From Lepidodermella squamata (Eukaryota > Animalia > Gastrotricha): a stretch of DNA of 64,000 nucleotides. Below, one piece after another: positions 24,901 through 51,769 of this stretch; position 1 is the stretch's first letter; each line of letters opens with the position of its first letter. The translations under genes were made by a program, and so were the position numbers. The notes under the pieces were generated by a model. The model ran no database searches. It saw only the letters and a program-made list of their open reading frames with translations, and was not told the DNA's origin. Where the stretch lies: positions 682,001-746,000 of the forward strand of contig JBLDXI010000019.1 in assembly GCA_047495785.1 (NCBI GenBank), written 5' to 3'.

Positions 24901-25234
24901 CCAATTTACGTTTCTACCTAGAAATACTCCACTCGACAGATAACAGACAATTTTAGATTCTCCTCACTTGGCATTTACAGTTTAGCACTTTTACTGCTTG
25001 CTTCTGGTTTCATCATAGTTTTGGATAGCTCGAACGGTCAGCGTGTCTTGCTGACCGCATCATGCCTCTCGCTTTGCGCAGCCATGCTGACATGTGTTCT
25101 TGTGATAATGCCGAAAGTAAGTTCCAAACATGATTTCCTATTGTAATGAAAATCTCCCAAATCAGTTCAAGAAAAGACTTGCACGGAATCACCCGAATTT
25201 CGTCTCATCGACTTCCTACCATTTTCGCTCATAA
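21964..25234 (+). CDS. Class C GPCR copy 5 (9 exons), apparently intact; intron 5 enlarged by a MITE
   Basis: Close paralog of copy 4 across all exons. The last exon FKKRLARNHPNFVSSTSYHFRS ends in TAA at 25232-25234. Confidence 0.85.
23398..23766. mobile_element. Degenerate Tc1/mariner-type MITE in intron 5 of GPCR copy 5
   Basis: Imperfect inverted termini ta|cgcgagtcccataa ... ttatgggacacgctg|ta with TA on both flanks. The intron is about 430 nt here versus about 50 nt in the paralogs. Confidence 0.7.
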
Positions 25235-27906: not shown

Positions 27907-30536
27907 GCTAATATACGAGAGCTAGGCTACGTATTTGCCTATATGCGACGCGCCCGTGTTGAATTACGAAATGCTGCGGCAAAAAACGGCCTGTCCTTGC
28001 GCTTCGTCGCTTATATTTTTTTGTTGTCACTTGTTTTTATTGAGGATTTAGGTGCAGTTTTTTCGGCAATATCGCTTTGTCAAGTAAATAGCACCATTTA
28101 TACTCGAATATAATGTATTAACTGCGAGTATGAATTTGGGGGATATTCAAAGACAAACCCGCTTAATTGTCAGACGATGACACAGCAAATAAGACGGCAA
28201 ATATTGATGCTGCTGCTCTGTGCAATTATAATGCGACTAGCCATGTGTAAGCTAGAATGTTACAATCTGGATGAGGAAAGTATGCCGTTGTTGTAAACCG
28301 GTGGGGCAGTAATGAATTAGTTTCCTGAATTTCAACATCAAATCAAGAACCACAGTAGAACAACGAGAAACCTAATACAAGGCACTATCAGCTAAAGCTA
28401 TGAACAGCTATGATTCAAATTGTATGTTCCCAGAGCAGATAAGGTGATAAGTTATCTCAGGCACAATGGCAGCGGTATTTGACAGAAATCGCAGTCTATC
28501 ATATTTCCAAAAATGTGGGCTGAGTATGATAAGTTGGAGAAAATAGGGGAAGGAGGCTTTGGTAAAGTATTCAAGGCTGAGGAGCATTCAACTAGAAAGA
28601 TTGTCGCCGTTAAGAAGATCAAGTATGACGACGACAAGCAGCTGGAGAAAGCTGAAGCTGAGGTATATGTGCCATAAAAATCGTCATGTATCGTCGATTA
28701 ATCCAATTTTATTTTAGGCAAAAATAACTCTGCCACTGGAGCACGAGAATGTTGTTCGAACATTCCGAAGCGTGCGGCAAGGTTTGTTTGTCATTTTTCT
28801 CCATCAGTTACCCTGAATTGAGCTATATTCATTAGCCAAAGCGATATTCATAGTAATGGAATTCTGTTCGGATGGTGACCTTCTTATGGAAATAAAACGC
28901 ACTGCGCTGGAAAACAAACTGTTGTCTGAGAAACACGTCGCTCACAGATTGCTGCATCTGTGCAGAGCCGTGCATTTCCTACATGAGAGGAAAATTCTAC
29001 ATCGAGATATCAAAGCTCAGGTAAGCTATCAAGGTTTGAGCTGCATGTAATTGTCAATAAATGTAACAGAACTGTTACTTGGTCAACGACACGCTCAAGT
29101 TGGGCGATTTTGGAATTTCGAAAGCTATCATGGATGGGTAAATCAGTGAGGGCTCGTAACTAATTTCCATTTCTTGCATGGGCTTTTAGACAATCCTCGC
29201 AAAACAGCTTTCGCACTGTTGGAACTGTGACACATTATTCCCCGCAAATTTGCGATGGCCTACCATTTACCAAGTTCGATGACATCTTTGCAATTGGAGT
29301 CGTTTTGTACCACATGCTAACATTGAAGCTACCGGTAATTACGGCAGTGTTATATCGTACTGAAACTTGATCTTACCCTATCTAGTATCCAAAAGCTGCT
29401 GATCATACGTTCAACGCAGTGATGGAAACAATGAAGCTGATAAAAGCGTAATAATTGCAGTCATATCAGCCTACTTACTTAAAAAAGATGCGTTATAGGG
29501 GAAAGCCAGAGCCCATTCCATACAAGAGTGGTTATTCGCCGGTAATGCACAATCTGACGGATCAGTTTCTTCACTCTATCCCCGAGCAGAGACCTCTTTT
29601 AACATCCGTTATAGACGAGCTAATCTGCGACGAAACGGTTCGAAAACTAGTTGAATTTATTTGCTTGAATCTTAATTTAGCCTAACAGGCGCCAGCTATT
29701 TTCTCAGCTGCTAGGACGGGCGATTTGGGGACGTGGTTTCAAGTGATAGGCCGTATTCCGCCACATTTGTTGTCCGATGTACTATGCAGACCCGACAGAG
29801 AAGATTCAGCCAAGAAAACTGCTCTACACCAAGCTGCAAGCCATGGCTCCACTGAAATCGTGCGATACTTGCTAGATAACAATGTTCCATACCACCTTAT
29901 GGATTTCACGGGAAAAACTGCATTGCAATACGCCGAAAAATTCGGACATGGCGAAATAGTCGACATGCTGGAAGTGGAGTTCCAATCTACACTATCTCGT
30001 ATGATTAATGCCGTGAAATCGGGGGACATTTCTACCCTTACCTCTGGCATGGTTCACAATAGGATTCTAAGTACTAGCTTGGATGAAAAAGGCACGAAAC
30101 TTCTACATCTGGCTTTCGAGACTAGACGGCCTGAAATTGTTAAATTTCTGATGACTAACAGACCTAATATGGATCTAGACAACGATGGCCTGACACCTTT
30201 GCATAGGGAAATTATATACCAGGCCGATTGCTCATTTTTTTCGGAAGTTTTAGTTGCAAGATTTGTGAATTCGGCTGACAGTAGCCCGAATAAATACACT
30301 CTTCTACATACAGCTGCTATTTGTGGCAAGACCGAATTTGCGAAAGTTTTATTGAAGGAAGAAGCCAATGTAAAACTGCGAGACTCGTCGGAAAGCAAAT
30401 CGTTGGCTATACATCTGGCTGCAAAATATGGCAATGCGGAAATAGTCACCTTGCTACTCGAGAAAGATTCATCATTACTGCTTGAAGTTGATTCCTTCAA
30501 CCGAAACCCATTGCACCTCGCTGTTATCGAGAATAA
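27907..30536 (+). repeat. Segmental duplicate (upstream region + kinase + first ankyrin repeats) of about 34001-36683
   Basis: Non-coding 27907-28420 aligns with 34001-34565 (e.g. taatatacgagagctagg, gtaaaccggtggggcag, aatcaagaaccacagtagaacaacgagaaacctaatacaagg). Coding similarity continues to gagaataa at about 30536. Confidence 0.9.
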
Positions 30537-30618
30537 CCTCTGTCCGTTACGGTGGAATCACCCATATATGTTGGATCATAGTCACGCGTCAGGACAAATC
30601 GTATATAGTTATAAATGA
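28513..30618 (+). pseudogene. NEK-like kinase + ankyrin gene, copy A, 3'-truncated (8 exons; kinase intact, only about 7 ANK repeats left)
   Basis: [45 protein letters not shown]. Homology to copy B stops abruptly after LHLAVIEN (about 30536) and the frame runs on in unrelated sequence to TGA at 30618. Confidence 0.8.
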
Positions 30619-30790
30619 CCCTCGAGAAAACAATACGTAAACAACAGTGGCATAAATGCACAAGAATAGAGTCTCGTTAGCGTTTCGGTATAACTCTCCA
30701 TATTTGACGGTAACTCCTACTCGCCATTGTTCTCTAGTTGCGGTAAACAATTTACAACCGTAAACGGCACTACCTCGACTCTGAAGCATA

Positions 30791-30974
30791 CAGTGTGGCC
30801 AAAAAACTCCGCAGAGCGGGAATTCGCTGCATGCGCATCATTTTAATGAGGAGTTTCAAGAAATTGAGGAGTTCCATTGGCAAAAGAATGCTTGAAATTC
30901 TTCAACTTCTTAAAACTCTTCATTAAATCGATGCGCAGCGAATTCCCGCTCTGTGGAATTTTTCGGCCCCCATA
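30791..30974. mobile_element. Foldback/hairpin MITE (about 184 bp), Tc1/mariner-like
   Basis: ta|cagtgtggccaaaaaactccgcagagcgggaattcgctgc...cattttaatgaggagttt is the near-perfect reverse complement of aaactcttcattaaatcgatgcgcagcgaattcccgctctgtggaatttttcggcc. TA flanks on both sides. Confidence 0.8.
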
Positions 30975-31348
30975 TATTCCATGGGCAATTTAGGCGCAAT
31001 TACCTGGCCATACCTGTGAATCGCCTCGAGTCGCGGTTTTTTTCCTTGTTATCAGCAAAGGAAATGGTCGAAGGAAAAAAATGTCATCTGAACTCAAAGC
31101 CTTTCGATTGGTTACAGATAATTCAATTCCTATGGGTCGTTTTTACCGGCCTAAACATACCTGTAAATACTGGCTTGCCGTGACCTCATTTTGGGACATC
31201 ACTGGCTGAAAATTTTTACAGATGTAGGGGGTCTGTAGAAGATTATCTGCACCAATTATTTCAGAGTCTATGAGCTATTAAAAGTAATACTATGACATCA
31301 ATTTTCGGCCAAATCGCCCCAAGTGCCCATTTCACCCCAAACGACGGT

Positions 31349-31550
31349 AGTGTGACAGTATGACAATTTGATTTCCTATGGCATTTATTGAGTCCGCTCT
31401 GATCGATTGCAATGACTGCCGCTTACCACTACAGCCGCAGCTTTAAGGCATGAATTAAGTAGTTGCTGTTGTATGAAACTATTTTCCCGCCGAATAATAT
31501 GTATTATAGACGGAACGCTGTCATCGAAAGCACAGCAGCACATTGGAAGA
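31349..31550 (+). repeat. Direct copy of 48421-48620 (sequence upstream of the fucosyltransferase gene)
   Basis: Shared text includes tttattgagtc.gctctgatcgattgc.atgactgccgct and gcagctttaaggcatgaattaagtagttgctg.tgtatgaaa. Confidence 0.9.
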
Positions 31551-31735
31551 TTACAGGGCGGCTTTATATCGCAGGCCCGTTGGTCTAGGGGTGTGATTCT
31601 CGCTCCGGGTGCGAGAGGTCTCAATTCCCGAACGGGCCCTCTCAATTTGTCTCCATTATTTATTCCCAACAATTTTGAATTTTAACAAGCAGTTATCAAA
31701 ATGTATCACATGATCTAGGCATTTAACTTCATATC

Positions 31736-31807
31736 TCCCTGATGGTCTAGTGGTTAGGATTCCACGCTTTCACCGCGGCGGCCCGGGTTCGATTCCCGGT
31801 CTGGGAA
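31736..31807 (+). tRNA. tRNA-Glu(TTC), with two stem mismatches
   Basis: TCCCTGATGGTCTAGTGGTTAGGATT...CTTTCAC...GGGTTCGATTCCCGG...GGGAA followed by an oligo-T Pol III terminator. T:T mismatch in the acceptor stem and A:C in the anticodon stem. Confidence 0.85.
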
Positions 31808-32013
31808 AGTTTTTTTCTGAAACGAGTCGTTTTTGCTGCTAATCGCAAAAAGTCGAGCAAGGGTCAGGGATATCGAAGCCTCAATCGTCTGCTTACTAGG
31901 CAGATGATCTATCACTAAGCTATATCACTTTTGACTTAGATGGCCATTCAGTCCAATTTTAAGCCGCGGTAGCTGAAGATTCGGGCAGTCCGTCTTCTGT
32001 GACCAAAAATTGT

Positions 32014-32086
32014 TCGAGGATACGGGCGTCGATCACGTCACCTCTCGCATGCTAAGCGAGCGCTCTACCATTCGAGCTAATCCCCC
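32014..32086 (-). tRNA. tRNA-Ala(AGC), degenerate/possible pseudogene
   Basis: Reverse complement GGGGGATTAGCTCGAATGGTAGAGCGCTCGCTTAGCATGCGAGAGGT...GATCGACGCCCGTATCCTCGA matches the eukaryotic Ala-AGC consensus. G1:G72 mismatch and one T-stem mismatch; oligo-T downstream. Confidence 0.8.
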
Positions 32087-32196
32087 ACGTGTCTGAGTCA
32101 CCATTTAACAAAGTAATTGTATGAACAATAACGTAGAACTAGCGGTAAAACTGGCGTCCTCCGAGAGACTCGAATCCTTGACGCTGCGATTTATCT

Positions 32197-32673
32197 GTGT
32201 CCCCACATGTGACACGGGATACGCATGTGACGTAGATAGGACATAGGACGCCGCACTCAGAGCACGCCGACAGACAAGAAGACGTGTTCACCTTTTTCCT
32301 CATTAATATTCAGAATATTTACAGCTTAAAAAAAAATAATATGACGGGGCTCAATTCGAATTTGATTTTAATAATTAACATTTAAAAATTTAAAATTAAT
32401 TAGTTCAAGTTTCAAAGATCGCAAAAAGTAGTGATTTGGCGCGGTTCCCGAGACGCTACAAAGAGGAGATGCTTCTTTAAAGATGAGTTCAGCTGATGAA
32501 ATGGCAGCATCTGCTCGAAAGTACACAGAAATAGCTATTTGGGTGGAAAATTATGAGATGATTCATCACATTAAATTTGGAATGATGAACTTTGCCCCTT
32601 ATTAGTCTGACTTCAGTTTTTCGTGTCCGAAAACCTCTTAGTGCGGCGTCCTATCTACGTCACATGGGGATAC
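32197..32673. mobile_element. Non-autonomous DNA transposon/MITE with inverted termini of about 35 bp
   Basis: Left catgtgacgtagataggac(ataggac)gccgcactcagag is the reverse complement of right ctcttagtgcggcgtcctatctacgtcacatggggatac. The left end has small internal duplications; the interior is AT-rich and non-coding. Confidence 0.7.
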
Positions 32674-32704
32674 GGGGCTTCGATTGCCTGCCAAGGAGCT
32701 GACT

Positions 32705-32768
32705 TTTTCATGTGGGGTCGAACCCACGACCCTGGGATTAAGATAGTCGGCCCTAGCTCTACCGTAGT
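32705..32768 (-). pseudogene. tRNA-Lys(CTT)-derived remnant
   Basis: The reverse complement contains cggtagagc...tcttaatcccagggtcgtgggttcgaccccac, matching the D, anticodon and T arms of eukaryotic Lys-CTT. The acceptor stem is lost. Confidence 0.6.
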
Positions 32769-33394
32769 TTTTAAGTTGCCGGCCATAGCCGAGCGATCAT
32801 AAGCCAGACTTGCGGCCATTAGCCGGACCATTTTGCTTGGCTCGTGCTGTAGCCTAGCGTTTTATACATGCAAATGGTTGCAATAGGCCGAACTTGCGTT
32901 ACAAGGACTGATTTTTAGTGAATTTAACTCAAAGAAGTCCGGCTTATAGCTTAAAGGATATTTAATTTTCGTCTAGACCGCATGAACACCCTCGCCATGC
33001 TGTGTTTGGGTGGCTTCAACAGCAAAATGTTTGCAGTGTCTTGAAAAATAACTGTTCCCTTTTGTTGCAAAACCTTAATTACAGCTCGATAATCGATAAT
33101 CTCAACCGGGCGATCACCAAAGTTTGTTTGAAAACCGAAATCTTTATTCTGCCTCTTTTTCCTTTTCCTAAACGACCTCTATCCGGGAGCACGTGGCTCG
33201 TGACCCGCCGGTGATAATAATCGGTATTATAAAACAGTATTATTATAAACAGTAATAAATTGCATTTAATATTTGGTGGCGACATGTTACACAATTCATC
33301 AAATTCAAATTACTGTGAATTTCCAAAGTCTTAAGTCCGAAATCTTCCTTATGGCCATGACAGGGTTAACGCAAAACTGCTATAGGTAAACAGC

Positions 33395-33992
33395 TTCCGG
33401 CGGCAAGTAAAATAAGGAATTGTGCTAAAAATATTTCGTTATAGTTCTTTGGGATATCTAACATCAAGATGATTGAGATATAAGGCGATGAGCGATGCAA
33501 GTTGACGGCAAACGTTGCTTCAGACTTTGGCAAAAAAGCTGGCCTCGATGCTCAAGCTAATGCATCATAAATCTAATTTTCGCCTTTCTAAGACAGAATA
33601 AACGGCTCAACTGGTTGAGAATGCAGGTTCGCCATCCTTCGAGACTGCAGTGTTATGGAAAACATGGTTTGGTCAGCGAGATTGGGCTCAGATGTTCGCC
33701 ATGTGGCCGAATGCTCCTTACGTTGATACCGGTGAAAATCCTCCGAGAAAATGCTTTGTCACCGCAGATCGGCGAGATCTAAATGGTTGAGCATTATCGT
33801 TTCCACAGGCCATTATAATTTCAGAAACAAATCAAGAGAAAAAATGATGCTTTGTTATTTCACGGCCGCGATTTTTCTTCCAACGACATTCAACAACTCT
33901 GCAACACGAAACCCTCATACAAATGGATATTTTTCCTTGTCGAAACGCAGATTCATAGTGGTTTGACTACTTATGGGACATGGTCAACGCTA
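33395..33992 (+). pseudogene. 5' partial pseudogene of the alpha-1,3-fucosyltransferase at 49071
   Basis: Aligns to about 48969-49654 including upstream sequence and the intron. It has an in-frame TAA about 21 codons after ATG 33495, a deletion of the TM-coding segment and further indels, and ends at tggtcaacgcta. Confidence 0.9.
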
Positions 33993-34665
33993 ATATATAT
34001 TAATATACGAGAGCTAGGCGCAAGGCGAAGTATTTGCCTATATGCGACGCGGCCGTGTTGAATTGCGAAAAAAATTTCGTCTTGTTACCACCGCCGAGGC
34101 GATTATAGCAAAATGATAACAAAATGTTATTTTTGCTGCGGCTAAAACGGCCTATCCTCGCGCTTCGTCGCTTATGTTTTGTTGTCACTTGTTGGATTTA
34201 GGTGCAGTTATTTTCGGCAATATCGCATTTTCAAGTAAATAGCACCATTTATACTCGAATATAATGTATTAACTGCGACTTTGACGGATAATCAAAGACA
34301 AACCAACTTAATTGTCAGACGATGACGCGGCAAATACGACGGCAAATATTGATGCTGCTGCTCTGTGCAATTATAATACGACTAGCCATTTGTAAGCTTG
34401 AATGTTGCAATCTAGAAGATAAGGAAAGTATGCTGTTGTTGTAAACCGGTGGGGCAGCAATGAATTAGTTTCCTGAATTTCAACATCAAATCAAGAACCA
34501 CAGTAGAACAACGAGAAACCTAATACAAGGCGCTATCAGCTAATTAAAAGCTAATGATTCAAATTGAGCATTTACGCAGATAAGAAGGGGTATACGTTCT
34601 CCCTATCTCAAAGGCAGTAGTATTTTACCGAAGTTGCATTTCTTCTTATTATCGTAACTGCGAGA

Positions 34666-37600
34666 ATGTGGAGCAAGTATCAAAAGTTGCAGAAAATTGG
34701 AGAAGGAGGCTTTGGTAGAGTATACAAAGCTGAGAAGAATTCAACAGGAGAAATTTTTGCAATTAAGAAGATCAAGTTTTACGATGACAAGCAGCTGGAG
34801 AGAGCTGAAGCTGAGGTAAACGATAATCTTTTGAGAGTATTGTTGATACATCCACATTCTAGGCAAAAATAACTCAACCTCTTAATCACGAAAATATCGT
34901 TCGAACATTTGACTACGAGCGGCAAGGTATGCTTATTGCCATCATCCGCTGTCAGTGATCCCAAATTGAGCTATAATATAGGCAATGCGATATTCATGGT
35001 GATGGAGCTTTGTTCTGATGGCGACCTTCAAATGGAAATAGAACGCTATGCGCGGGATAACAATTTTATGTCCGAGAAACACGTCACTCGCAGATTAACG
35101 CATCTGTGCAGAGCCGTACAATTCCTTCATGAAAACAACATTATACATCGAGATGTGAAAGCTCAGGCAAGCATCATTTCTTTAGTCTCGATAAGTGATA
35201 AAACGGCATTGTAGAACTGTTACTTGCACAACGATACACTCAAATTGGGCGATTTCGGAATTTCAAAAGAGCAAGCGGTAGATGGGTAGATGAGTTGTAA
35301 TGTTACATGAAATCTTATTGTTTCAATTTTCTAGGCAATCCTCACAAAACAGTTTCCGAACTGTTGGAACAGTAACGCATTATTCCCCGCAGATATGCGA
35401 AGGAAAACCGTTTACCAAGTTTGATGACATCTTTGCGATTGGAGTCGTACTCTACCACATGCTCGCACTGAAACTGCCGGTAAGTAAAAACACGTGACAC
35501 ATCCGTTCTCGAACTACAGGCATATATTCCAGTATCCAAAAGTTGCCGATCATTCGCTGGCCTCAGCAATGGATACAATGAAGCTGATTCAGGCGTAATT
35601 TTTCTCATATCAGTTACTTCAATTCATGTGACCTAATTTAATAGCGGGAAGCGAGAGAAAATCCCTGACGTTTATTCGAAGAAAATGCTCAACCTGTCGA
35701 ATCAGTTTCTCGAGTCCAACCCAGCACGAAGACCTACATTGGCCTCAGTTGTCGATCAGATAATTTGCGATGAAACGGTAATACCAAATGAATGTCAAAC
35801 AAAATTAAGGAATTTTAATTCGAATTCATAGATGCCGGCTATTTTCTCAGCCGCTAGGACGGGTGATATGGGGATGTGGCTTCAGGAAATAGGCCGTATT
35901 CCGCCTCACCTATTGTCCGATGTATTGCGCAGACCAGACTGGGAGGATTCAGCTGGGAGGAAAACCGTTCTTCATCATGCTGCGAGCCATGGCTCAACTG
36001 AAATTGTGCGGTACTTGTTAGATAAGAATGTTCCTTACAACCTTATGGATTCCACGGGGACAACTGCATTGCAATACGCCGAAAGATTCGGACATAGCGA
36101 TATCGTCGACTTGCTGGAAGTTGCATTCAAATCTTTGCTGTCTAAGGTACTTAATGCCGTGAAATCTGGAGACATTTCTACTCTTACCTCTGCTATGATC
36201 GACAATAAGATTTCAAGCACCAGCTTGGATGATAAAGGCTCCAAACTTCTTCATCTGGCCTTTGATACTAGACGGCCTGAAATTGTCAAATTTGTGATGG
36301 CTAACAGGCCTAACATGGAGCCAGACAACGCTGGTTTGACACCTTTGCATAGGGAAATAATGCTTCAGGACGATTGCTCCTTGTTTTCGAAAGTTTTAAT
36401 GACTCGATTTGTCAATTCGGTTGACAGTAGCGCGAATAAATTCACTCTTTTGCACACCGCTGCCATTCACGGAAAGGCCGAATTCGCGAAAATTCTTTTG
36501 AAGGAAGAGGCCAATGTCAAACTGCCGGACTCGTCGGAGAGCAAATCGTTGGCTATACATCTAGCTGCGAAATATGGCCATGCGGATATTGTTAATTTGC
36601 TGCTCGAAAAGGATGAATCGTTACTGCTTGAAGTTGATTCCTTAAAGCGAAACCCACTGCACCTTGCAGTTCTCGAGAATAAGCTAAATGTGGTGAATTG
36701 TATTCTCGACTTCTGCCGAAAGAACAATGTTGACATCAAAAACTTGGCGAGTGCCAAAGATGGCAGCGGAACTTCCCCCAATCAACAAGCCTTGAGATCG
36801 CGCTATATGGAAATTCTTCTTACATTCGTGGCAAGCGGCGCTTATTTCGTTGATGCTGACGCGAATTTGACCGTTCTCCATCAAGCGGTGTTGGATGGAA
36901 ACATTGATTTTATCAATCTTACCGATATTTATTCAGCGATGTTCAATATCAGCGAATTAAGAAGAGGATATACGCCACTTCATCTCGCAATCAATGAGAA
37001 AAAGTCCGAAATCGCACTCATTTTGATCGAAAACGGGGCGAACTTCCTTGCAGCAGATAATGGGATAAATGCCCTTCGGCTGTCATATGAATCCGGCTTG
37101 TTTCAAGTTGTAATCGCTCTGGTACAAAAAGGCGTTTACTTCCTCGATGCAAACGCTAAATTTACCGTTCTTCATCAAGCTGTGGTCCATGGAAATGTTG
37201 ATTTCGTCAATTGTATCGACAGTAATTCAGCGATTATAAATATCAGCGAATCAACAAATGGATATACGGCGCTTCATTTTGCAATTTCGGAAAGAAAATC
37301 CCATCTTGCTTGCATTTTAATTCAGAAAGGTGCTGACTTTCTCAAAGCAGATGATAATGGCGACACTGCAATTCAGCTAGCAGTTAAAACTGGAGATTTC
37401 GAAGTTGTTAAACTTATTACTGAGGCTGGCTGTAATTTACACATTGCGAACGCTAAATCTGGGAAAACACTGTTGCATTTGGCAATCGAGTTTGGGCATA
37501 CTGAAATATCAGATTTTCTTATTAACAAAGGCGCTGATGGTTTTGCCCATGATATTAACAACTCAACTCCAATCGAGATGGCAATTCAAAAGAAAATTGA

Positions 37601-38804
37601 TTCGAGTCTGATCAAGTCCATTTTAGTTACAAGTCGTCCTTCAATCAAGCAAATTGTGCAGTGCATCGAATTTGCTGTCGATGAAAGATCCGAAGAAGCT
37701 TTAGTGGTCAGTCTGAAGCATTTGGCTGCAACTAATCAAATGGCAATACGTGAAAATCCGTTGCAAATTTGTGCTGCCCTTGGCTTTGATGTTGCCCTGA
37801 AGTATCTTATGGCTTCGAGCCAGGGACCTATTGATTATTCATTACTCTCAAATATTGCTTGCGAATACGGAAAGGATGCGATTTTGAAGGCTCTGAGCAA
37901 ATCCAATCTTTCCCAGTTCAAACAAGCTCTTTCATCATCGGACAAGCCTTTAATCATAGCCGCCTCGAAAGGAAATGGAAAATGTTTTGAATTTCTCTTG
38001 AACGCCGATGTTTACGATCACGACATGCTTCAAAAATGTCTGGATCAGCTGAAAACATTTCAACCTCAGATCGACCCATCTTTGATTGAACTGTTGGAAA
38101 TGCACCTTCCCGCGCAGGCTTCCAGTTCTTTTGACCCACCTAAAGATGAGAGGCAGGTCATTCAACAACCTTCCTTGGCTGAAATGCTTTCAAATAACCC
38201 AGCAGAAGATGCGAGAAAAGCTGCTATGACTGGACAAGTTCCGCTGTTGAAAGCTGCTTTAAAGGTAACGGGAAAACTGCCGGATTTCACGGATCACGTT
38301 GGCGGGTTGAGGACTTTATTGCACGTGGCAGTATATTACGGAAAGCTAGAGGTAACAAAATGGCTGCTGAAAAAATTTCCGGTGGATTGCCGGAATATTT
38401 TGAAAGATGTCTCGTCTTCGCCAACCCCTTTTTACTTCGCCGTGGCAGGGAATCATTTGGAAATAGCTCTGCTGCTCATGAAACATGAGCATGATATTGT
38501 CAATCTTTCGGATCGCGATCGCTCTGCGCCACTCCATATAGCAGCTAAATTCGGCCATAAACAGATAGTTGAACTGCTCATCGACAATAAAGCAGATTTG
38601 CTAGCGATTGATGCCAATCAGCGAAGTTTCATTCACGTCGCGGCAGCTTACGGCCAGAGAGAACTCCTTGGATATCTAAAGCAAATCAGGAACAACAAGA
38701 AGGTGGATGCTGAAAAGGTTGAACGGGTGTTGCGATTGAACCCAACTGAAACTGAAATATTGATAAAACCTTTTCTGGAAGATGCCAGTTGTCACATTCA
38801 GTGA
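34666..38804 (+). CDS. NEK-like Ser/Thr kinase fused to a long ankyrin array, copy B (about 1260 aa); exons 34666-34815, 34863-34926, 34982-35166, 35215-35285, 35335-35479, 35533-35594, 35645-35777, 35832-38804
   Basis: [55 protein letters not shown]. The exons splice in frame into a 990-aa ANK exon. Intron 3 uses a GC donor. Confidence 0.88.
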
Positions 38805-39044
38805 TCATATTATCATGTTTTTATTCTTGAATAATTGTTTGATCAAATAATTGGGCTGGAGAATTGATTTGTAACAAGTGAAACTGTGTATTCGAAGCAA
38901 TAATCTAGCAAACTTTGATTGAAACAGACTTAAACAAATCGCTCATGAATTCATCAATAAAGCTCGAGTACTTGACAATAATTGATAATGAATTACAGAT
39001 TGCAAGCATTCAAAAATCTACCGAGGAGAATGATTGAAAGATGG

Positions 39045-42000
39045 TTACATTTTAATTAGCTTTTTGCAAAATAGCTGAATGATATCCTCTGAGTTAGCAA
39101 CCAAATCATATGCGCACTCAAGGGCAGTTTTACCGGCAGAATTTTTTGCGGTAACATTGACTGATTTACTATCAAGCAAATATTCAATCATTTCGAGACG
39201 CCTGTTGAGGACTGCTTCGTGAAGAGGGAAATTACCGTTTTTCTCGTTTGCAAAATTTGCAACCATGTTTTCAGCACGAACCATTATAGCGGTGGCTGCA
39301 TCAACGTTGCCATAAGCAGCAGCGATAAGAAGAGCAGAACGACCGAATTTGTCCGTGAATATGAACGTGGTATCATCAATACCACTCGGCCCAAAAAACC
39401 TTTCCAGTGTGTCTTTTTTTCCGTGGCTAAATAATTTATGAAAAGCAGCGTTTTCCTCATTGTCGGGCTGTCTAAGAACCGTTGAATTCGAACAGACGTC
39501 AGCGTTCCATAGGATGTCAATTGTCCTCACATCGTTGGTCATTATCGCGTGGTGAAAAACAGACAAACCGTCTTTATCCTCTGGAACGCCCGCCCATTCG
39601 AGACCTTTAAGCTCGACCAATTTCTCCAAAACATCGTACTGTTTCGCAGCAAACGCTAAGTGAGCTGGTGTTCTCCCATCGACATCCTTCGCTTTCACTT
39701 CGGCACCATTCTGCAGCAGATATTCAGCAATGTCAACATGGCCCTCCTGACATGCCACATGCAGTGCTGTGCTTTTATACTTTTGATGAGCTTGATCTAT
39801 AGCAGCTCTGCCGATCCTTGATCGTTGTAAGAATGGAACTAACTCTTCCACGATTGCCAACTTGTTGAAAAAAACAGCGTATCGCAATGCTGTTCTTTCG
39901 AATTTGTCTACACCGCTAATGATTACTTCGGGGTATTTCTCTTTGAAGACCCGAACGACATCAACGTGACCAGCAGCGGCGGCAAGATGAACGGGCTGTG
40001 CGCCCATGATGCCGTCAGTGCATGCAACGTTTGCTCCAGCAGCTAGAAGAGCCGCGACTGCACTCGGATGGTTTGAGGCTGATGCAAGATGAAGCGCTGT
40101 TCGACCATCAGCGTCTGGCTTCTCCAATATCCCACCCGCTGCCCCTTTCGTTGGATCCAACAAGTAGTTGATGACTCGCTCTTTACCGTGCATAGCTGCC
40201 ACGTGTAACACTGTGCGTGACTTACCATCAACGCATGCCTGAAGATTGACACCTCTTGACTTCAACAGTTGGATAGCCGAAACACCATGCGGACATATTG
40301 CAGCCAGATGTATAGGTTTCGACATGTCTTGCGTGCCATCTCCAACATCGGTATTAGCTCCGTGGTTCAGCAGTTTCTCCATTACACTAGTAAAACCTTT
40401 TATGGTGGCACAGTGTAGAGGAGTCCAGCCGTTGCCTCCCTGCTTCAGGTTGATAAGCCGCCGACGGTTTTCCTCATCCTTCAGCAAAAATTCAATCATA
40501 TCGCTTTGGCCTTTCAAAGAGGCACAATGTAGAGCTGTCGAGCCACGTTTCGTTCGGTCATTTACAAGATCGGCCCCTTTTTCAATAAGCTTTTCCGCCA
40601 CTTTGATATGACAAGAAATAGCTGCTAAATGAATAGGATGAGCGCCATGCTTGCTTCCATCGGTAGCTCTAATGTTGGCACCATTTTTCAGGAGTTCCTG
40701 AACAACTTTCTTTTTGCCTTCCAAAGCAGCGTAATGCAAAGCTGTGCGCTGATGCTCTCCGCCTTTGAGCTCGAGCATTTCCGAGCAGGTCCCTTCTCTC
40801 GACAGAAGGTGATGCACGATTTTATCTTGGCCAGAAATCGAAGCTGCATGAAGGAGAGTCAACTCTCGTTTGTCTCGCGTTGACCTTAAAAGCTCTCGCC
40901 TGCTACCCTCTGTGAGCTGTCTCAAGATGTTTAGATGTCCATTTTGCGCTGCCAGTTGAATCGGTTGTATTCCTAGCGGGGTTTCATCGCAGATTTCCAC
41001 AGTTGCATTGTTACTCAGTAGCACTTTGACGGCATCATCTGAACCTTTCTCACATGCCCCATGCAAAGGAGTCCTGTTACATTTTCCTTTGCTGTCGACG
41101 TGAGCCCCGTTGGCAATTAGAAGCTTGATTGTATCAGGTTTGTTGCCTTCAGCAGCAATATGTATAGCTTTGTCGCCATGCACCGTTGGCTGGTTGACGT
41201 TGACACCTCTTTTCAGAAGCCCCACAATGAAAGGGTTGTTCCCGAAGAGAGCTGCCCAGTGAATCGCGGCGAATTTATCGTCTCTATCGTCGCCCTCCTC
41301 ATAGCACTGAAGAAATTCAACCTTCTCCCGTTCCGTCCACTTAGCATCGAATAACTCGTCGATACGATCTGAAGCATTCGTTTTCGCGAATTCAATCAGT
41401 TTGAGACCCTTTGTTAACCCAAGATAGTGAACAATAAAATATAAAGCGCGATTATTACTCTTTCATGAGGCTTTATTTTAGGCGTCTCGAACATTTCAAC
41501 GATTTCCTTCAACGCTGGTCGATCGCTAGGATTGAGGTTGAGCAATTTATCAACAAGGCCTATCATCAGCGGAGAGCCACGATCCCTTGGAATCGGATTT
41601 CTTTTGCCTCTTTACAAATACAATTCGATTCGTTTTTAATAGAAGTATTAAGATTATCCTTACTTCATAATTGCTTGGAACGTTAGAAAGGGTGGCAAAG
41701 GTCCTTCAGGTGATGTCCCGTACTGTGGACATTCAATAGGATCATCATTACCTCATTTATAGAAACAATATTACCGGTAGTTCCCAGGCCAGCATGTGAT
41801 AGCTAACCACACCAAAGGCATAAATATCGTCTTTCACTGTATATTTCGCATTCTGCTCGCATAGCTGTGGGGAGAAGTGAGTGTACGTTCCGGCCAAGCC
41901 AGTATTAAGACTCAAATTGTTTGCCGCGCCGCCGGTTCTAGATCAAATATATTATATTGGCGCATATTTGCAACGAAATGTTTCAACTCACTGAGCTCCA

Positions 42001-42640
42001 AGAGTGATTTTTGAAACCCCGAAATCGCCGATTTTGACATTGCCGTCGTGGATAAAAATGTTTTCAGCCTTGATGTCTCGATGCATGATGCTTTTTGAGT
42101 GCATATAATCGAGCGCGCCCGCAAGCTGGCATAACCATTTTTTGACCGAATCCTCAGGAAACGGTTTCAATGTCTTCTTGCACTCGTCTATATTTTTGCG
42201 CAAGTCTACTCGGATTAAAGTAAATAATAGGATTGGAAATAAATTAATAATATCCGGAAACTCACCATTGTCACACAACTCCATGATAATCCAAAGGGCG
42301 CCCCCGTCTGACATGAATTTTCACGAATTATTTAGAATTATATTATTATATGAATTTACTTTCAAACGTTGAATAAACCCGCACAATGTTTGGATGTCTC
42401 AAGCTTTCAAGATCTGCCGCCTAGAATGTCATCAAGCATCAATTGGTATTAAATTATTTATGTTATTACTACAAGTACCTCTCGTTTCGCTAGTTCAGCT
42501 AACTTGTTGTCGTTACCAGTTATCCTATCCATGCGAACTTTCTTCATAGCCACATTGAGGTTGTCGGACAACCGCAATCCTTGCCACACTGCGCCGAAGA
42601 AGCCATGTCCAAGCTCCTTTCCTCGATGATAGTTTTCCAT
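39045..42640 (-). CDS. NEK-like kinase + ankyrin array, copy C (terminal ANK exon 41408-39045)
   Basis: GHGFFG, VAMKK, IIMELCDN, HRDIKAENIF, IGDFGVSK, LAGTYTHFSPQLCEQ, DDIYAFG. The ANK exon reads open from GLKLIEFAK into the 726-aa ORF. Confidence 0.86.
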
Positions 42641-44441
42641 ACTGTGTTAAGTGTTAATAAAGAGCAACAATATTTCACAACTGAAAAAGGCGGATGTAGT
42701 TATATATGTTATCTTCCGCTGACGCATGTTGCATTTTCTTATCACTGCCGTCTAAACGACATGGTCATACCAGATATATTATTTAGGGCTGGAATCCTAC
42801 AAGATAAACCGACGCCGCCATTTTTATATTTTTTTCTTCATCTTTGTGCATGCCGAATTTAGCTGAACACAGGAATACGAATGATGCAAAAATGCACTAT
42901 AAAACAGGCCAAATATGAATAAGTATAGCGCACAGACTCAAAAACTGCATGACTTGATCGCTGTGGGGTGAATTACCGCAAAACTTCACTTGTGTTTCAT
43001 TGGTGCTGATGTAATTTCATTGCTGAAAAATTTCATTGATGAATTATTGATCGCCGTTTTGAGGAAAATTGCTTTATTTCGATGTTGGCTACAAGGTCTT
43101 GAGACCAGGACACCGTTATCTTGCATCTTGCATTGTCAGGACATGCTAGCAATTTCAAAATAGTCAACCTGAGATTGAAAATTTTGATTTTTTCAACTTG
43201 ATCTGGCTTCTGAGGCTTCTAATAATTTTTTACCACGGTGTTTACCAAAAAATACCACGTTATCCGCCATAGTGTCATAGACCTCTGTGTCAATTTTTCG
43301 AGGGAATTAAAAATGACGACGCTATTGAAATTCAATCAAATTGCCCGAATTCGTCCTAACCTACCAGACAGGCGGAGTGCGTGATTTTTGTCCTGCAAAA
43401 ACTGTCGCGAAGGAAAAAAAGGAAAAGCTCAATGCTGATCTGAATGCCGAGCCTCTAAAACTTTTTAACTACATTTTTCGGTGCAAAAAATGAGGGAGAA
43501 TGTTATGGTCATTCATGGGGGTAATTTATAATCTAAAATTTAAAGCTGAAGGCACCTGACACAGAAATTAGGGTGCTCGAAAAATCGGCTGAAATCAGCT
43601 GGGTGTGTAGGACGATTTCGGCCCGTTTGTACAGCCTTAACGGGGATTGAACAGCCGAACGGATTTCAAAATCGTGATCAGGGCCTTCAAAACTGCCTTC
43701 AAAACTGCTTCAGAACTGCCGTCAAATATGTTTTCTCCCGCAGATAAATAATTCCGCCATGAAAGGGTTAAGGCGCGGAATACGGCCAGTTTTCTAGCTA
43801 TGGTTTCACTGTCCTCTCTCTCCTCTCTCCTCATACTCTCCGCATTTTATGCTCTTTACGGCGAACACCGCTGACATTATATAACTCGGAATTCCCGAGT
43901 GGATTCTAGTTCTGCGTAGAACCTGATTCTGTCTAAGCCCGTTTCAGGGGGCGCCTCGGGATATAGAGGATCGCCCGATACGGACAGCGCACTATGCGGA
44001 CAATTTTCTGGGACCTGTTGTGCCCGGATTACAGTATCTACTGTAACTAGAAGCCAAATTAAAGATTGGCAAGCGGTAACAGATTACCAAGATAAACAAT
44101 CAACCATCTTCACCAGCTTTCATCGCTTTATAGTACCTCGAGGGTCCGTTGAGGACTCTATTTTCGATCTATATCAACGAAATCTCAGTTGTCTCTATCA
44201 AATCAATCATGGTCTGATATGCTTACGGCTGATGACTGATGATATGATCACCAATGACGATGATGAACTGCGCTGATATTTTTTAATAATAATTTGTCTT
44301 TTATTTCCACGATTTTCGCTAACAATCAATCAACAATCAACAGTCGTTAATCAATAGAGCTGGAATAATTGCGAATCCATCTAACTCGAGATTACAAGCA
44401 TTCGAAATGACCTTTCAAAAAAATGGAATTTGGGTCAGGCA

Positions 44442-47400
44442 TTAGTTCATCAGCCTCCTGCGAAATAGCTGAACTACGTCCTCAAATTTTGCGTCATATG
44501 CACACTGAAGAGCAGTTTTCCCGGCAGAGTTGGTAGCTTTTATGTTAGTTGATAAGCGATCGAGCAAAAAATCAATCATTTCAAGACGCCTGTTGATGAC
44601 GGCCTCATGAAGAGGAGTATTCCCGTCTGCCTCGTTTGCCAAATGACCAACCATATGCTCAGCCCGCTTAAGAATTGCCGAAGCCGCATCTATGTTACCA
44701 TGAGCAGCAGCGATGAGTAGGGCGGAACGACCGGATTTGTCAGGAAATACGAAGATGGTATCACTGATGCCTTCCGGCTGCTCAAAGAACTTAGCAAGCA
44801 ACTCCTTTTTTCCATGACTAAATAACTTGTGGAAAGCAGCGTTACCCATATTGTCTGTCTGGCTAAGAACAGCTGCATTTGAGAAGACGCCAGCCTTCCA
44901 TAGGATATCCATTGCCTCGGTGTCGTTATTCATTACCGTGTGGTGGAAAACAGACAGGCCATCTTTATCAGGTTCGCCTGCGATTTCGACACCTTTTAGC
45001 TGCACCAATTTCTCCAACACAGCGTAGTGTTTGGCAGCTAGTGCAATATGACCTGGTGTTAGCCCTTCAGCGGTTTTCGCGTTTACATCAGCCCCATTTT
45101 GCAACAAATAGCCAGCGATGTTAACATGTCCGATACTACAAGCTAGATGAAGTGCTGTGTTGCCATATGACTTATGGCGCTCATCCAAGCCTGATGCTCC
45201 AGATGATTTCAACAAAGGTATAAGCTCTTTAACGGCTTCCAGTTTGTTGTTAAGAACCGCATAGCGCAATGCACTTTCACCGAAGTTGTCAACGCCGGTT
45301 CGGACTTCATCAGGATATTTATCTTTTAAGACTCGAATGACATTAGCATGGCCTGCGTATGCAGCAAGATGGACGGGATGTGCGCCAAACGTAGCGTCAG
45401 CACATGTCGGTTTTGCTCCAGCAGCCAGGAGAGCCTTGACAATCTCAGCATGATCATTTGCAGATGCGAGATGAAGCGCTGTTCGACCATCAGCGTCTTG
45501 CTTCTCCAAAATGCCAGAAACTATTCCTTCGTTTTTGTCCAACAAGTAATTGACAACTCGCTCCTTATTTGTCATAGCTGCCACGTGTAACACTGTACGT
45601 GACTTACCATCCACACACGCCTGAAGATTGACACCTCTAGTCTTCAACAATTTGATTGCCGTAACGCTGGTTACGGCTAAATGTAAGGGCTTCGACATGT
45701 CTTGCGTGCCATCTCCAACATCGGTATTAGCTCCGTGGTTCAGCAGTTTCTCCATGATGCCAGTTAGGCCTTTGTAGGCGGCACAGTGTAGAGGAGTCCA
45801 GCCATTGCCTCCCTGCTTCAGGTTGATAAGCCGCCGACGATTATCTTCGTCCTTCAGCAAAAATTCAACCATGTCGATTTGGCCTTTCAAAGAGGCACAG
45901 TGTAGAGCTGTCGAGCCGCGTTTCGTTCGGTCGTTCGCAAGATCCACCCCGGCTTTAATGAGCCTTTCAGCCACTTTGACATGTCCAGATACGGCGGCTA
46001 AATGGATTGGATGAGAGCCATGCTTGCTTCCGTCAGCAATTTTCAATTTGGCTCCTTTTTCCAAAAGTTCCTCAACAACTTTCTTCTTGCCTTCCAAAGC
46101 AGCGTAATGCAAAGCCGTGCGTTCATGCTCCCCGCCTTTGAGATCGAGAATTCTCAAACATCCTCCCGGTCTAGAAAGCAGATGAGCCACAACTTTTTCT
46201 TGACCGGCAATGGACGCAGCGTGTAGAAGTGTTAAGCCGCGTTTGTCGCGCGTCATTTGAAGTAGGTCCGGTTGATTTCCGGTTAGAAGTTTCATGATCC
46301 GAAGGTGCCCCTTTTCCGCAGCGAGCTGCACTGGCGATATCCCCAAATTGGTCGAATCACTTACATCTACCTTGGCGTTGGCTGTATTTATCAGATAATC
46401 GGCAGCTTCGTAGGAATCGTTTTCACATGCCACATGTAGTGGAGTCCGGCCACCTTTCCCTCTACTGTTAGCGTCAGCACCTAAGCGCTGTAGCAGCTCT
46501 ATTGTTCTGTATCTGTTGCTCTCAGCAGCCACGTGTATCGCTCTGTCGCCGTTTTTCGTTTGAAAGTTGACGTCGGCCCCATGTTTCAGGATGAGCGCCT
46601 CAATGAAATCATTGTTGCCATATAGAGAAGCCCAGTGAATCGCGGCATATACATCGTCACCGTTGTCGTCCTCGTCATATTGCTGCAGAAATGTAGCTGA
46701 TGTCTCGCCAAATCGTAGCAGCTCGCTGATACGTTTCGCTTCGTTCTTCTTGGCGAATTCCATCAATTTCACGCCCTTATTAGTTATTCAGATAAAGATA
46801 ACGAGATTACAAAATACTTATATCAAAATTTACTCGTTCTTGCGGCTTCATTTTCGGCGGTTCAAACATTTGGACGATGTCCTTTAGCGCTGGCCTCTCA
46901 TTGGGTTCGTATTTGAGCAGTTTGTCGACGAGACTTATCGCAACCTGCGAGTAATCGCGATCTTTTGGTATCGGCTTCCTTTGGCCTCTAGATTATGAAC
47001 GCCGATATATTTGGGACGATTTGACTGCCGTCAAACTTACCTCACAATAGCTTCCATTGTTTCTGTCATGGCTTTAATTCCTGGAGCCGATGATGCATAC
47101 TGTAAAGAGATTCCCGTCATTTTTATCTACATTAATAACTTCGACGGGACTTTACCGGTAGCTCCAAGGCGAGCATATGATAGCAAACCACACCAAGGGC
47201 GAAAATATCGTCTTCCAATGTGTAAGGTTTGCCTGTACACAGTTGTGGGCTGAAGTGAGTATAGGTTCCAACCATGCCAGTAGTAGTTCCAGCTAGGCTC
47301 GCGTTCTGCACTCTGCGTTGAGTAGGCAGAGAAAATACTCAGTAAACGCAATTAAACAACAAATTGTCACTAACGGCTCTTCGGTGATTTTTGACACGCC

Positions 47401-48005
47401 GAAATCGCCGATTTTGGCATTATCGTCTTGAATGAATATGTTTTGCGCCTTTATGTCGCGATGCAAGATGCTTTTGGAGTGCATGTAATCGAGCGCGCCT
47501 GCCAATTGGCATAGCCAATTTTTAAACGTCTTCTCGGGAAACGGAAGCGATTTCTCCCGGCGATCACGAATATTCACAAGCAAATCTTCATGAAATGAGA
47601 CATTTGAATTTGAATATTTGATTGTTCGGAAAATTACCGTTGTCGCACAGCTCCATAATAATCCATAGGGAACCGCCACCTTGAATAAGTCAAATTAGAC
47701 AAATTAAGTCAAATTAGACGAAATTACTTTCAAATGAAGTGTTAACTTTGACAATGTTTGGATGCCTCAAGCGTTGAAGTACCTCTGCCTGTATATCAAA
47801 TCGTTAAAAATGAAAACCGCCGCAGTTCACACAATAAATTTACTTCTCTTTTGGCCAGCTCGGCAAATTTTTTGCTGTTTTTACCGATCCTATCCATGCT
47901 GATTTTCTTCATGGCTACCATTTGATTGTCCGATAGCTGGATGCCCTCGTAGACGGTGCCAAAGCCGCCTTGACCGAGCTTCCTTAATTTCCTATAACTT
48001 TCCAT
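44442..48005 (-). CDS. NEK-like kinase + ankyrin array, copy D (tandem paralog of C)
   Basis: GQGGFG, VAMKK, HRDIKAQNIF, IGDFGVSK, MVGTYTHFSPQLCTG, DDIFALG. The 776-aa ANK ORF is collinear with copy C. Confidence 0.86.
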
Positions 48006-49070
48006 AGCTATTTGCACTAGCTAGTTTTTTGTTTTTGGGAAGCCGAGAACGTGCGGATGTGTCCCGCTGACACATTTCACATTGATTTGTTATCGCCGGT
48101 ACTTATACTCGCAATAGATACACCCACGAAGCGGCTTAAAACCCGTGAGATAACGCCGTAGCTGCTTTTATCTTTCTCAACTTTCTCCAGCAATTTATGT
48201 TCAAGTTGTATCATTTCACTAACCAGAATCGTAGTTGAACGACCACAACAGTAAAACGTAAAACAGCGGCATAAAACAACAAGAACAGAGTCTTTCAAGT
48301 TATACATGGATGCTGAATTGACGAAAGATCAAGTCTGCGTTTCAAGATCAATGTGAGGATTCTAAAATCTTGCAAAAAAACCCCATGACTCTTCGCTCCT
48401 AATGGGCGGAATCAACTTATAGTGTGACAATTTAATTTCCTATTGCGTTTATTGAGTCGGCTCTGATCGATTGCTATGACTGCCGCTGACCAATGCGTCC
48501 GCAGCTTTAAGGCATGAATTAAGTAGTTGCTGCTGTATGAAAAGATTTTCTCGCCGAATAATTATGTATTATATAGACGGAACGCTGTCCTGTCATCGAA
48601 AGCACAGCCGCACATTAAGAATTTATGCATCGACTCGCACGTTGTTTATTCAATTTTTTTCAGCTGCATATGAATTAGAATTACGCAGCTTTATCGAGAG
48701 CGTGCGCACAGGTAAGCAGCGTGAGCAAGGAAACACAGCACTGCGCGCTACTGCCTCAATGCCCGGTCAGTGTGTGTGCATGTGTATGTATGGTTGTTTT
48801 TCCAGTTTTAGAGTTGAGAGCACATTGCGATATATTCCGGCTTAATACTATTTACGCGCCAAAAATCGCGCGTGAAAAAGTAGCGCGATAAGGCGCTACA
48901 TGCGTCAACAAAATGTATTGTTTTGTTTACCGCTGTTCATTTACCCCACTTGTAATATATGTGTATACCTTCCGGCGGCAGGTAAACTAAGGAATCGTGG
49001 TTTACAATATATCGGTATAGTTCTTTATAGGATTTCTAACATTAAGATGATTGAGATAAGGCGATGAGCG

Positions 49071-51443: not shown

Positions 51444-51769
51444 AAGTGCCGTATGACCATCTCGCAGCTAAATTGAAACCTAGCGAAACAATGCACAGAG
51501 CAGGAATTCCAACAAACTTACACCGGCATATCCGATGTCGGGGCAGCGGTAGGAAACACTAAGCACAGGCGGTGAGCTTTCATCCGTCGCGAACGTGGCT
51601 GGCGAGTGACACATTTTTTGTCTATGAGACCTTAGAATTCCGTGAAATTAATTGTCTTCTGAGGTTCTGGGTTAAGTCATGAAAACTTGGACATGAAACA
51701 ATTTTGACACTCAGCCAGTACATTTTTCGATTTTTGAATAAAACTTAAACTAACACGATAATTTGAAAA

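Follow-up and report, generated by a model that had tools for sequence, protein, structure and literature searches.

Does the interval 28513-48005, in which small kinase exons repeatedly precede one large ankyrin exon, hold a genuine family of kinase-ankyrin fusions, and if so, from which kinases did it arise and what might it do? An earlier interpretation made from the letters alone (the sequence-only reading) proposed four NEK-like kinase-ankyrin fusion genes and took them for a candidate undescribed receptor-kinase family. Based on the analysis of the whole 64-kb stretch of DNA (the window), we consider that the four genes, A to D, are probably paralogues of one lineage-specific family of soluble proteins, in which an N-terminal NEK-like kinase was fused once to one long ankyrin solenoid that targets the kinase. 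The searches and the folding were run on single ORFs or exons or on exon profiles, and the spliced proteins were used only in local computation, i.e., for the frame checks, identities, dN/dS and local tree.

Gene models and transcription of the kinase-ankyrin junction

Of the eight exons in each of the four paralogous genes, seven are small and together encode the whole of a kinase domain, whereas the eighth is large and encodes the ankyrin repeats (Table 1). In the spliced models, the frame stays open over 580 aa in A, 1260 in B, 1071 in C and 1059 in D, which bears out the proposed layout, and its outer coordinates, 28513 and 48005, proved to be the exact ATGs of A and D. Across the four models, the introns are 47-62 nt long (49-55 nt in A, 50-60 nt in C and 48-62 nt in D) and GT-AG with the exception of intron 3 of B, which is GC-AG. 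The large ORFs, 29725-30618(+), 35832-38804(+), 39045-41225(-) and 44442-46772(-), matched ankyrin in Pfam (Ank_2, E 3e-46 to 5e-105), while the small upstream ORFs matched Pkinase (E 2e-11 to 2e-20); nothing beyond Pkinase and ankyrin families was found by Pfam in the four genes, the tail consisting of ankyrin families alone. The roughly 20 repeats that had been expected in the full copies agree with the 18-24 or so that are carried by B, C and D. The single-sequence AlphaFold model of the D ankyrin exon showed helix pairs between residues 40 and 660 or so, with a mean pLDDT of 62.5, which serves repeat counting only, and that of the B ankyrin exon (pLDDT 50.8) was too low for use. No kinase exons beyond those of the four genes were found within the window, and exact look-ups of its ORFs returned no record. 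A LINE reverse transcriptase had its best match (66%) in a JGI metagenome contig, and an adenylate-kinase-like ORF had none.

A public sequencing run with RNA-like behaviour (X1; the RNA label is a guess) and a DNA run (X2) were compared with B. Introns 3, 5, 6 and 7 of B were skipped in the X1 contigs and were not skipped in X2. Because the X1 contigs skip the junction intron (35777/35832), the kinase-ankyrin fusion is transcribed in B. The corresponding X1 joint, 35776/35831 (cut +1, with 35 letters on the shorter side), and the joint 35594/35645 had equal depth (8.44), which suggests that both lie on one contig. The kinase and ankyrin parts are spliced in frame in B, with evidence of the RNA type, and the ankyrin exon of C was also covered by X1 contigs. 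The sequence-only reading had placed the B junction exactly and had suggested that RNA reads be used to confirm it, which the X1 contigs do; its junction for C was slightly displaced, as the modelled one is 41459/41408 and not 41457. That the models have artificially united two adjacent genes, one for the kinase and one for the ankyrin part, as could be argued from the restriction of the read evidence on the junction to B and from the ATG with which the B ankyrin exon opens, is barely credible, since an X1 contig links exon 7 of B to exon 8 in frame across a canonical GT-AG intron, and all four genes have the same phase-0 junction intron, over which the frame stays open, despite a kinase identity of only 36-41% between the subfamilies A/B and C/D.

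Table 1. Positions of the gene parts, junction introns and duplicated segments in the window
Feature	Position	Strand	Remarks
Gene A (28513..30618), kinase exons	28513-28662, 28718-28781, 28836-29020, 29070-29137, 29190-29334, 29386-29447, 29499-29637	+	Pfam Pkinase
Gene A, junction intron	29638-29688	+	
Gene A, ankyrin exon	29689-30618	+	~8 repeats, then 26 unrelated residues and stop; Pfam Ank
Gene B (34666..38804), kinase exons	34666-34815, 34863-34926, 34982-35166, 35215-35285, 35335-35479, 35533-35594, 35645-35777	+	intact frame
Gene B, junction intron	35778..35831	+	54 nt, phase 0, GT..AG
Gene B, ankyrin exon	35832-38804	+	990 aa, ~20-24 repeats
Gene C (39045..42640), kinase exons	42640-42479, 42420-42360, 42307-42266, 42205-41992, 41937-41775, 41722-41664, 41609-41459	-	intact frame
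Gene C, junction intron	41409-41458	-	
Gene C, ankyrin exon	41408-39045	-	~18-20 repeats
Gene D (44442..48005), kinase exons	48005-47844, 47788-47728, 47679-47638, 47585-47375, 47312-47156, 47099-47041, 46987-46834	-	intact frame
Gene D, junction intron	46776-46833	-	
Gene D, ankyrin exon	46775-44442	-	~18-20 repeats
Duplication block A	27972..30539	+	homologous to 34134-36685 (B); self-blastn 77% over 2616 bp
Duplication block C	39052..42411	-	homologous to 44446-47779 (D); self-blastn 70% over 3423 bp
Fucosyltransferase fragment between A and B	33381..33992	+	frameshifted, copied from the start of a GT10 gene (5' part) and its upstream DNA; source 48956-49655; self-blastn 84-85%

Affinity of the kinase domain

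A, B, C and D all keep the G-loop, VAIK Lys, alpha-C Glu, HRD..N and DFG, and, judged by their residues, the kinase domains look catalytically competent. The catalytic loop reads HRDIKAQNIF in D, HRDIKAENIF in C and HRD(I/V)KAQNCY in A and B; the motif HRDIKAQN, which had been ascribed to the whole cluster, is found in A and D, but B has HRDVKAQN and C has HRDIKAEN. Similarly, MExCxxGDL is true of A and B, but it is interrupted by an intron in C and D, where splicing yields MELCDN-DL. In the activation segment of all four genes, GT(Y/V)TH(F/Y)SPQ replaces GTPxYxSPE, the signature that is carried by the canonical NEKs, and because of this alteration and the change of APE to SPQ, the kinase activity is uncertain.

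When a profile of the catalytic exon from the four paralogues was compared with solved structures, NEK7 (77.5 bits) and NEK1 (77.1 bits) led, and the top 11 matches were all NEK7 or NEK1 constructs, one of them a PKR-NEK7 chimera; the next single-stretch non-NEK kinases scored about 55 bits. The activation-segment profile gave NEK1 first (38.7 against 30.2), as did exon 5 of B and of D, each alone. These exons support the earlier assignment of the kinases as NEK-like, with NEK7 and NEK1 as the closest among the solved kinases. The proposed separation from RIPK4 and ANKK1 also held, as none of the nine solved-structure searches gave a RIPK chain among its best 60 matches, and the TKL matches in them were RAF, MAP3K12 and MLT alone, well under the NEK scores. 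Moreover, the nearest library proteins include some that were named Nek5 and Nek11-like by their sources.

It is possible, though unlikely, that the kinase represents a separate 'Other'-group lineage with a core that merely resembles NEK. Exon 1 was most similar to CDK5, CDK1 and CDK2 (47.7 bits) and the last kinase exon gave no group information, so that two exons carry the group assignment. The single-exon searches of solved structures were noisy, with GCN2, PIM1, CDK1, STK33 and PKR near the top, of which GCN2, STK33 and PKR would suit such a lineage; the four-paralogue profiles were clearer. The altered activation segment would also suit it, as would the identity of the nearest library kinases, which is 40-55% over short stretches only, and the local tree, which leaves the place of A-D among their neighbours without resolution. 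However, NEK7 and NEK1 are more than 20 bits ahead of the single-stretch non-NEK kinases in the catalytic profile, and the activation-segment exon gives NEK1 first in both subfamilies. A NEK-like kinase is the assignment that we prefer.

Origin of the fusion and its relatives

In a local tree with the 75 nearest kinase domains, A-D formed one clade (SH-aLRT 98), and six of the seven intron positions and phases, including those of the junction intron, are common to the four genes, which together indicate that the fusion arose once. Since two old subfamilies have one gene structure, it also predates their split. A single fusion would thus have given rise to A/B and C/D, and each subfamily would then have undergone local duplication, C/D as whole genes and A as a copy of the 5' part of B. 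Expansion by birth-and-death had been proposed for the cluster, and the self-blastn blocks, A with B and C with D, show duplication with partial-copy turnover. The block of A takes in about 540 bp of upstream DNA together with the kinase exons and roughly the first 850 bp of the ankyrin exon, and the homology stops at 30539; A, which had been called truncated, is in fact a partial duplicate of B that covers its 5' part, and may be a young non-functional copy. The frameshifted fucosyltransferase segment between A and B, of which ORF fragments were seen, is a trace of the rearrangement that produced A; an intact GT10 fucosyltransferase gene, which matches Glyco_transf_10, is located at 49412-50422. 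The dN/dS values were 0.17-0.25 in both the kinase and the ankyrin parts, and both domains are under purifying selection.

A library of representative proteins, 1.84 billion in all, yielded no close relatives of A-D. With the C catalytic ORF as the query, HMMER returned 47,995 kinases, none above 55% identity, and among the best 150 of them, ankyrin was present in four and the order kinase-then-ankyrin, for which a search had been advised, in none. A word search with the D ankyrin exon gave generic ankyrin proteins (ANKRD52 and alike, with identities of up to 32%), and a kinase domain was absent from all 120 that were listed; an ESM Atlas feature search gave nothing but generic kinase fragments. 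In the library that was searched for literature, an animal NEK-ankyrin family was not found.

Several known systems resemble the four genes in part. The canonical animal NEK1-NEK11 share with them HRDxKxxN(I/C)(F/Y) and the placing of the kinase at the N-terminus, before a non-catalytic tail, the similarity to structural chains being best in the catalytic loop, DFG region and activation segment. The tails of the canonical NEKs are of the coiled-coil, RCC1, PEST or DEAD type and are not known to be ankyrin. The vertebrate RIPK4 and ANKK1 are also soluble, with an N-terminal Ser/Thr kinase and C-terminal ankyrin repeats; however, their kinases belong to the TKL/RIPK group, whereas the solved-structure matches of A-D are led by NEK7 and NEK1, and the A-D arrays are about twice as long. 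In the flatworm Macrostomum lignano, the ANK-kinase-kinase proteins of the P0235 cluster (about 80 bits against the D kinase) combine the same domains, but in the reversed order, ankyrin and then two kinases, and in the local tree they form a long branch that is not sister to A-D.

The pairing of a Nek with ankyrin is so far on record only from the parasite Giardia lamblia, which was overlooked when the sequence-only reading knew of no canonical NEK with an ANK tail: in 133 of its 198 Neks, the kinase is N-terminal and 1-26 ankyrin repeats come after it (PMC3218828). In the Giardia kinome paper, Manning et al. (2011) reported the Nek-ankyrin association in no other species (PMC3218828). As in A-D, an N-terminal NEK-type kinase precedes a variable ankyrin array in large, lineage-specific families that duplicate locally, a likeness of layout that does not imply common descent. 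The Giardia repeats are of the TALM type, whereas A-D have no TALM motifs and carry T(A/P/L/V)LH instead; 71% of the Giardia Neks are catalytically dead, whereas the catalytic residues are kept in all four kinases; and introns are very few in Giardia, a protist, whereas A-D are eight-exon genes in an animal-like genome. The two origins are almost certainly independent, and because TALM is absent from A-D, any parallel would be convergent.

Possible roles and meaning of the family

The reading of A-D as membrane receptors was rejected. The proteins start directly at the kinase G-loop region, no signal peptide or membrane-like segment was found in any of them (maximum 19-residue Kyte-Doolittle mean 1.34-1.58), and the hydropathy peaks fall within the alpha-F helix of the kinase or within helices of the ankyrin repeats. 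With no NTPase or other sensor domain either, the term receptor-kinase does not fit. For activity, binding role and any cellular process, we infer that the ankyrin array would be a protein-binding module that sets the location of the kinase and its partners or substrates and may also restrain it, while the kinase would phosphorylate Ser/Thr on whatever the array recruits.

A more specific role as regulators of the cytoskeleton, cilium or cell cycle, comparable to that of the expanded Neks of Giardia and ciliates, in which the ankyrin tail would send each paralogue to its own structure, is rather unlikely. It would suit the NEK7/NEK1-like core and the purifying selection, which is expected of a housekeeping-type function, and the Giardia Nek-ankyrin proteins localise to specific structures, one of them having been relocalised upon deletion of an ankyrin repeat (PMC3218828). 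The Giardia TALM signature, however, is found in none of the four genes.

Decidedly unlikely is an intracellular immune or stress sensor, in which binding of a ligand, microbial or danger-related, by the array would cause the kinase to signal, as had originally been suggested. The duplication and partial-copy turnover would be in keeping with it, as would an NTPase-like ankyrin ORF at 4687-7626 in the same window, and long arrays in clustered, duplicating genes are also known from the fungal and animal STAND/NLR proteins with ankyrin sensors. Those proteins, however, have a NACHT or NB-ARC NTPase, and Pfam revealed neither in A-D, nor a TIR, death or other signalling-hub domain. Their sensor arrays also differ from those of the cluster, which are neither homogenised nor hypervariable; the repeats of C and D are individually distinct and are conserved repeat by repeat between the two genes. 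The low dN/dS of the ankyrin exons speaks against ligand sensing, and diversification of the binding face between C and D was rejected, as 37% of the DARPin-type binding-face positions differ against 29% elsewhere (p 0.15). The cluster data give no support to an immune function. It is improbable, too, that A-D are the older, non-diversifying branch of a large animal-lineage family with NEK-derived kinases, whose ankyrin solenoids would be variable intracellular recognition modules and would form a kinase-coupled sensor repertoire independent of NLRs and of Giardia.

The reading that we favour, a soluble NEK-like kinase targeted by its ankyrin solenoid, adds to the kinase-ankyrin fusions that were known before, i.e., the RIPK-type in vertebrates and Nek in Giardia. 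The cluster supplies a transcript-supported junction and two old subfamilies of one gene structure. If this reading is true, an independent family of NEK-like kinase-ankyrin fusions, expressed and maintained by selection in an animal-type genome, would represent a second origin of the Nek-ankyrin pairing and would provide a tractable case of the re-targeting of a kinase by a repeat scaffold.

Gene models and transcript support

Six-frame ORFs, Pfam matches and gene models of eight exons confirmed the cluster of four genes, A and B on the forward strand and C and D on the reverse strand, that the sequence-only reading had described as kinase exons joined to one large ankyrin exon. The large ORFs were ankyrin (Ank_2, E 3e-46 to 5e-105), and upstream of every one of them, on the same strand, were short kinase-like ORFs that matched Pkinase (E 2e-11 to 2e-20); no additional kinase-like exons were found across the rest of the window. 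The models were obtained by enumerating the frame-keeping GT/GC..AG introns between adjacent coding pieces. In each of them the frame is uninterrupted, seven exons encode a kinase of 270-284 residues and the eighth encodes the entire ankyrin tail. The introns are 47-62 nt long and GT-AG throughout, with the exception of intron 3 of gene B (GC-AG). The outer limits that had been proposed for the cluster are the start codons of the two outermost genes. The proposed B junction (35777/35832) matched the model exactly; that of C was present, but was 2 nt off (41459/41408 in the model). The motif MExCxxGDL occurs in A and B but not in C and D, in which an intron lies inside it.

Positions of the kinase-ankyrin genes, their ankyrin ORFs and neighbouring features
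Feature	Position	Strand	Remark
Gene A	28513-30618	+	580 aa
Gene B	34666-38804	+	1260 aa
Gene C	39045-42640	-	1071 aa
Gene D	44442-48005	-	1059 aa
Ankyrin ORF, gene A	29725-30618	+	six-frame ORF, Pfam
Ankyrin ORF, gene B	35832-38804	+	six-frame ORF, Pfam
Ankyrin ORF, gene C	39045-41225	-	six-frame ORF, Pfam
Ankyrin ORF, gene D	44442-46772	-	six-frame ORF, Pfam
tRNA-Glu(TTC)	31736-31807	+	rearranged DNA between A and B
tRNA-Ala(AGC)	32012-32087	-	rearranged DNA between A and B
Intact GT10 fucosyltransferase gene	49412-50422	+	adjoins D

The read evidence from two public runs, X1 and X2, was confined to window positions 34600-40599, and transcript support is limited to gene B. X1 contigs lack exactly four introns of gene B, namely 35167-35214 (GC-AG), 35480-35532, 35595-35644 and 35778-35831, the last of which is the kinase-ankyrin junction (shorter side 35 letters, depth equal to the neighbouring joint); in B, the kinase exons are therefore spliced in frame to the ankyrin exon, as had been predicted. 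X1 is labelled as RNA by guess only, but canonical in-frame intron skipping that is absent from the DNA run would be hard to explain if it were not RNA. X1 contigs also covered the C ankyrin exon within this region. The X2 contigs were unspliced and approximately 1.7% divergent from the window, and this run behaves as DNA. Between 34786 and 36684, 33 of 1896 positions differed, and X2, which is from another strain or a close species, also lacked 3 nt of B intron 2 (at 34973).

Kinase identity and relatives

The G-loop, VAIK Lys, alpha-C Glu, HRDxKxxN and DFG are retained in all four kinases. At the position at which APE is almost universal among protein kinases, all four have SPQ (activation-segment exons 29190-29334 and 35335-35479 on the forward strand, 41775-41937 and 47156-47312 on the reverse), a derived feature common to the family; the subdomain XI partner Arg of this site is retained. 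Kinase searches were run by single exon and by four-gene exon profiles rather than with a joined protein. The catalytic-exon profile matched NEK7 (77.5 bits) and NEK1 (77.1 bits) best, and its top 11 entries were NEK7 or NEK1 constructs throughout, one being a PKR-NEK7 chimera. EGFR and GCN2 came next, reached only via two summed stretches, while NEK2 scored 56.5 bits and the remaining kinases at most 55. The activation-segment profile placed NEK1 first (38.7 bits) and bacterial StkP second (30.2), and the single B and D exons gave the same NEK1-first order. The proposed NEK-like identity was thus upheld by these two exons but not by exon 1, for which CDK5, CDK1 and CDK2 were the best matches; the last kinase exon was uninformative on kinase group. 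A RIPK4/ANKK1-type kinase was refuted at the level of the exon searches, as RIPK, ILK, DAPK and LRRK2 chains were absent from every top list. In the representative library, the kinase domain as a whole was best matched by dinoflagellate tandem-kinase proteins, whose cluster includes one member source-named Nek5, and by a tunicate protein named Nek11-like. NEK-like is the best-supported label.

A word search on the ankyrin exon of D yielded only generic ankyrin proteins (identity at most 32%), with no kinase domain among the 120 proteins listed. When the C catalytic ORF was used in an exhaustive HMMER search, 47,995 kinases were returned (top identity at most 55%, over short stretches), and only four of the best 150 bore ankyrin repeats, from Trichoderma, Achlya, Phytophthora and Macrostomum lignano. 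None of these has the layout of A-D: the Trichoderma match is ordered kinase-ANK-kinase, and that of M. lignano, which was not sister to A-D in the local tree, ANK-kinase-kinase. An exact look-up of the window ORFs in the assembly index gave no record. In Giardia, 133 of 198 Neks consist of an N-terminal kinase and then 1-26 TALM-type ankyrin repeats, an association that, according to the authors of that study, occurs in no other species (PMC3218828). Giardia is the sole described case; the TALM repeats typical of its proteins number zero in A-D, and no animal counterpart was found in the literature searched.

Duplication history

In a local tree of A-D and the 75 best-matching kinase domains of the representative library, the four genes formed a single clade (SH-aLRT 98) with A+B and C+D as sisters, and hence the fusion is older than the subfamily split. 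Six of seven intron positions are common to both subfamilies with identical phases, including the phase-0 junction intron; an intron after HRDxKAQ is found in A/B alone, and one between MELCDN and DL in C/D alone. Amino acid identity is 72.5% (kinase) and 79% (shared ankyrin part) for A and B, and 62% and 65% for C and D. Between the pairs it is 36-41% for the kinase and approximately 25% for the ankyrin part, a generic repeat similarity. At the DNA level, the duplications are delimited by two block pairs: 27972-30539 corresponds to 34134-36685 (77% identity) and 39052-42411 to 44446-47779 (70%). Gene A duplicates only the 5' part of a B-like gene, together with approximately 540 bp of upstream DNA; the homology of its ankyrin frame ends at 30539, and the stop follows 26 codons further. 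Between A and B, the 5' region of the fucosyltransferase gene recurs as a frameshifted copy at 33381-33992 (84-85% identical).

Elsewhere in the window, a 980-aa ORF (4687-7626, reverse strand) combines a weak N-terminal P-loop NTPase match (AAA_22, E 9e-4) with strong ankyrin repeats downstream of it and may be a STAND/NLR-like ankyrin gene. Another family is present in three copies (9039-11654, 15665-18509 and 21888-25123; nucleotide identity 66-83%), one ORF of which matches 7tm_3 (class C GPCR), and ANF_receptor ORFs lie at 3337-4209 (reverse) and 52348-53262 (forward). At 56694-59842 (forward) is a LINE-type element that has ORFs for an endonuclease and a reverse transcriptase; a 459-bp stretch of it (59590-60048) recurs 8.6 kb upstream at 50988-51446 with 100% identity, and the best database match of the reverse transcriptase was a metagenome contig (66%).

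Selection and possible function

No membrane-like segment was found in the A-D proteins, which start directly with the kinase, and the term receptor kinase in its usual sense is therefore inapplicable. The immune-sensor role that had also been proposed is a guess for this cluster: dN/dS was 0.17-0.25 for the kinase and ankyrin parts alike in both pairs, and diversification of a binding face was rejected, as across the 14 canonical C/D repeats, which align one to one, differences amounted to 37% at DARPin-type face positions vs 29% elsewhere (Fisher p 0.15). The arrays are built of individually distinct repeats and not of homogenised copies. A three-repeat super-period of TALH, PIHLAA and TxLHxA types, seen by eye in the ankyrin exons of C (39045-41408) and D (44442-46775), suggests array growth by units of three. 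AlphaFold prediction from single sequences gave weak models. On the best reading, the ankyrin solenoid would be a conserved protein-binding or targeting module that serves a Ser/Thr kinase predicted to be active.
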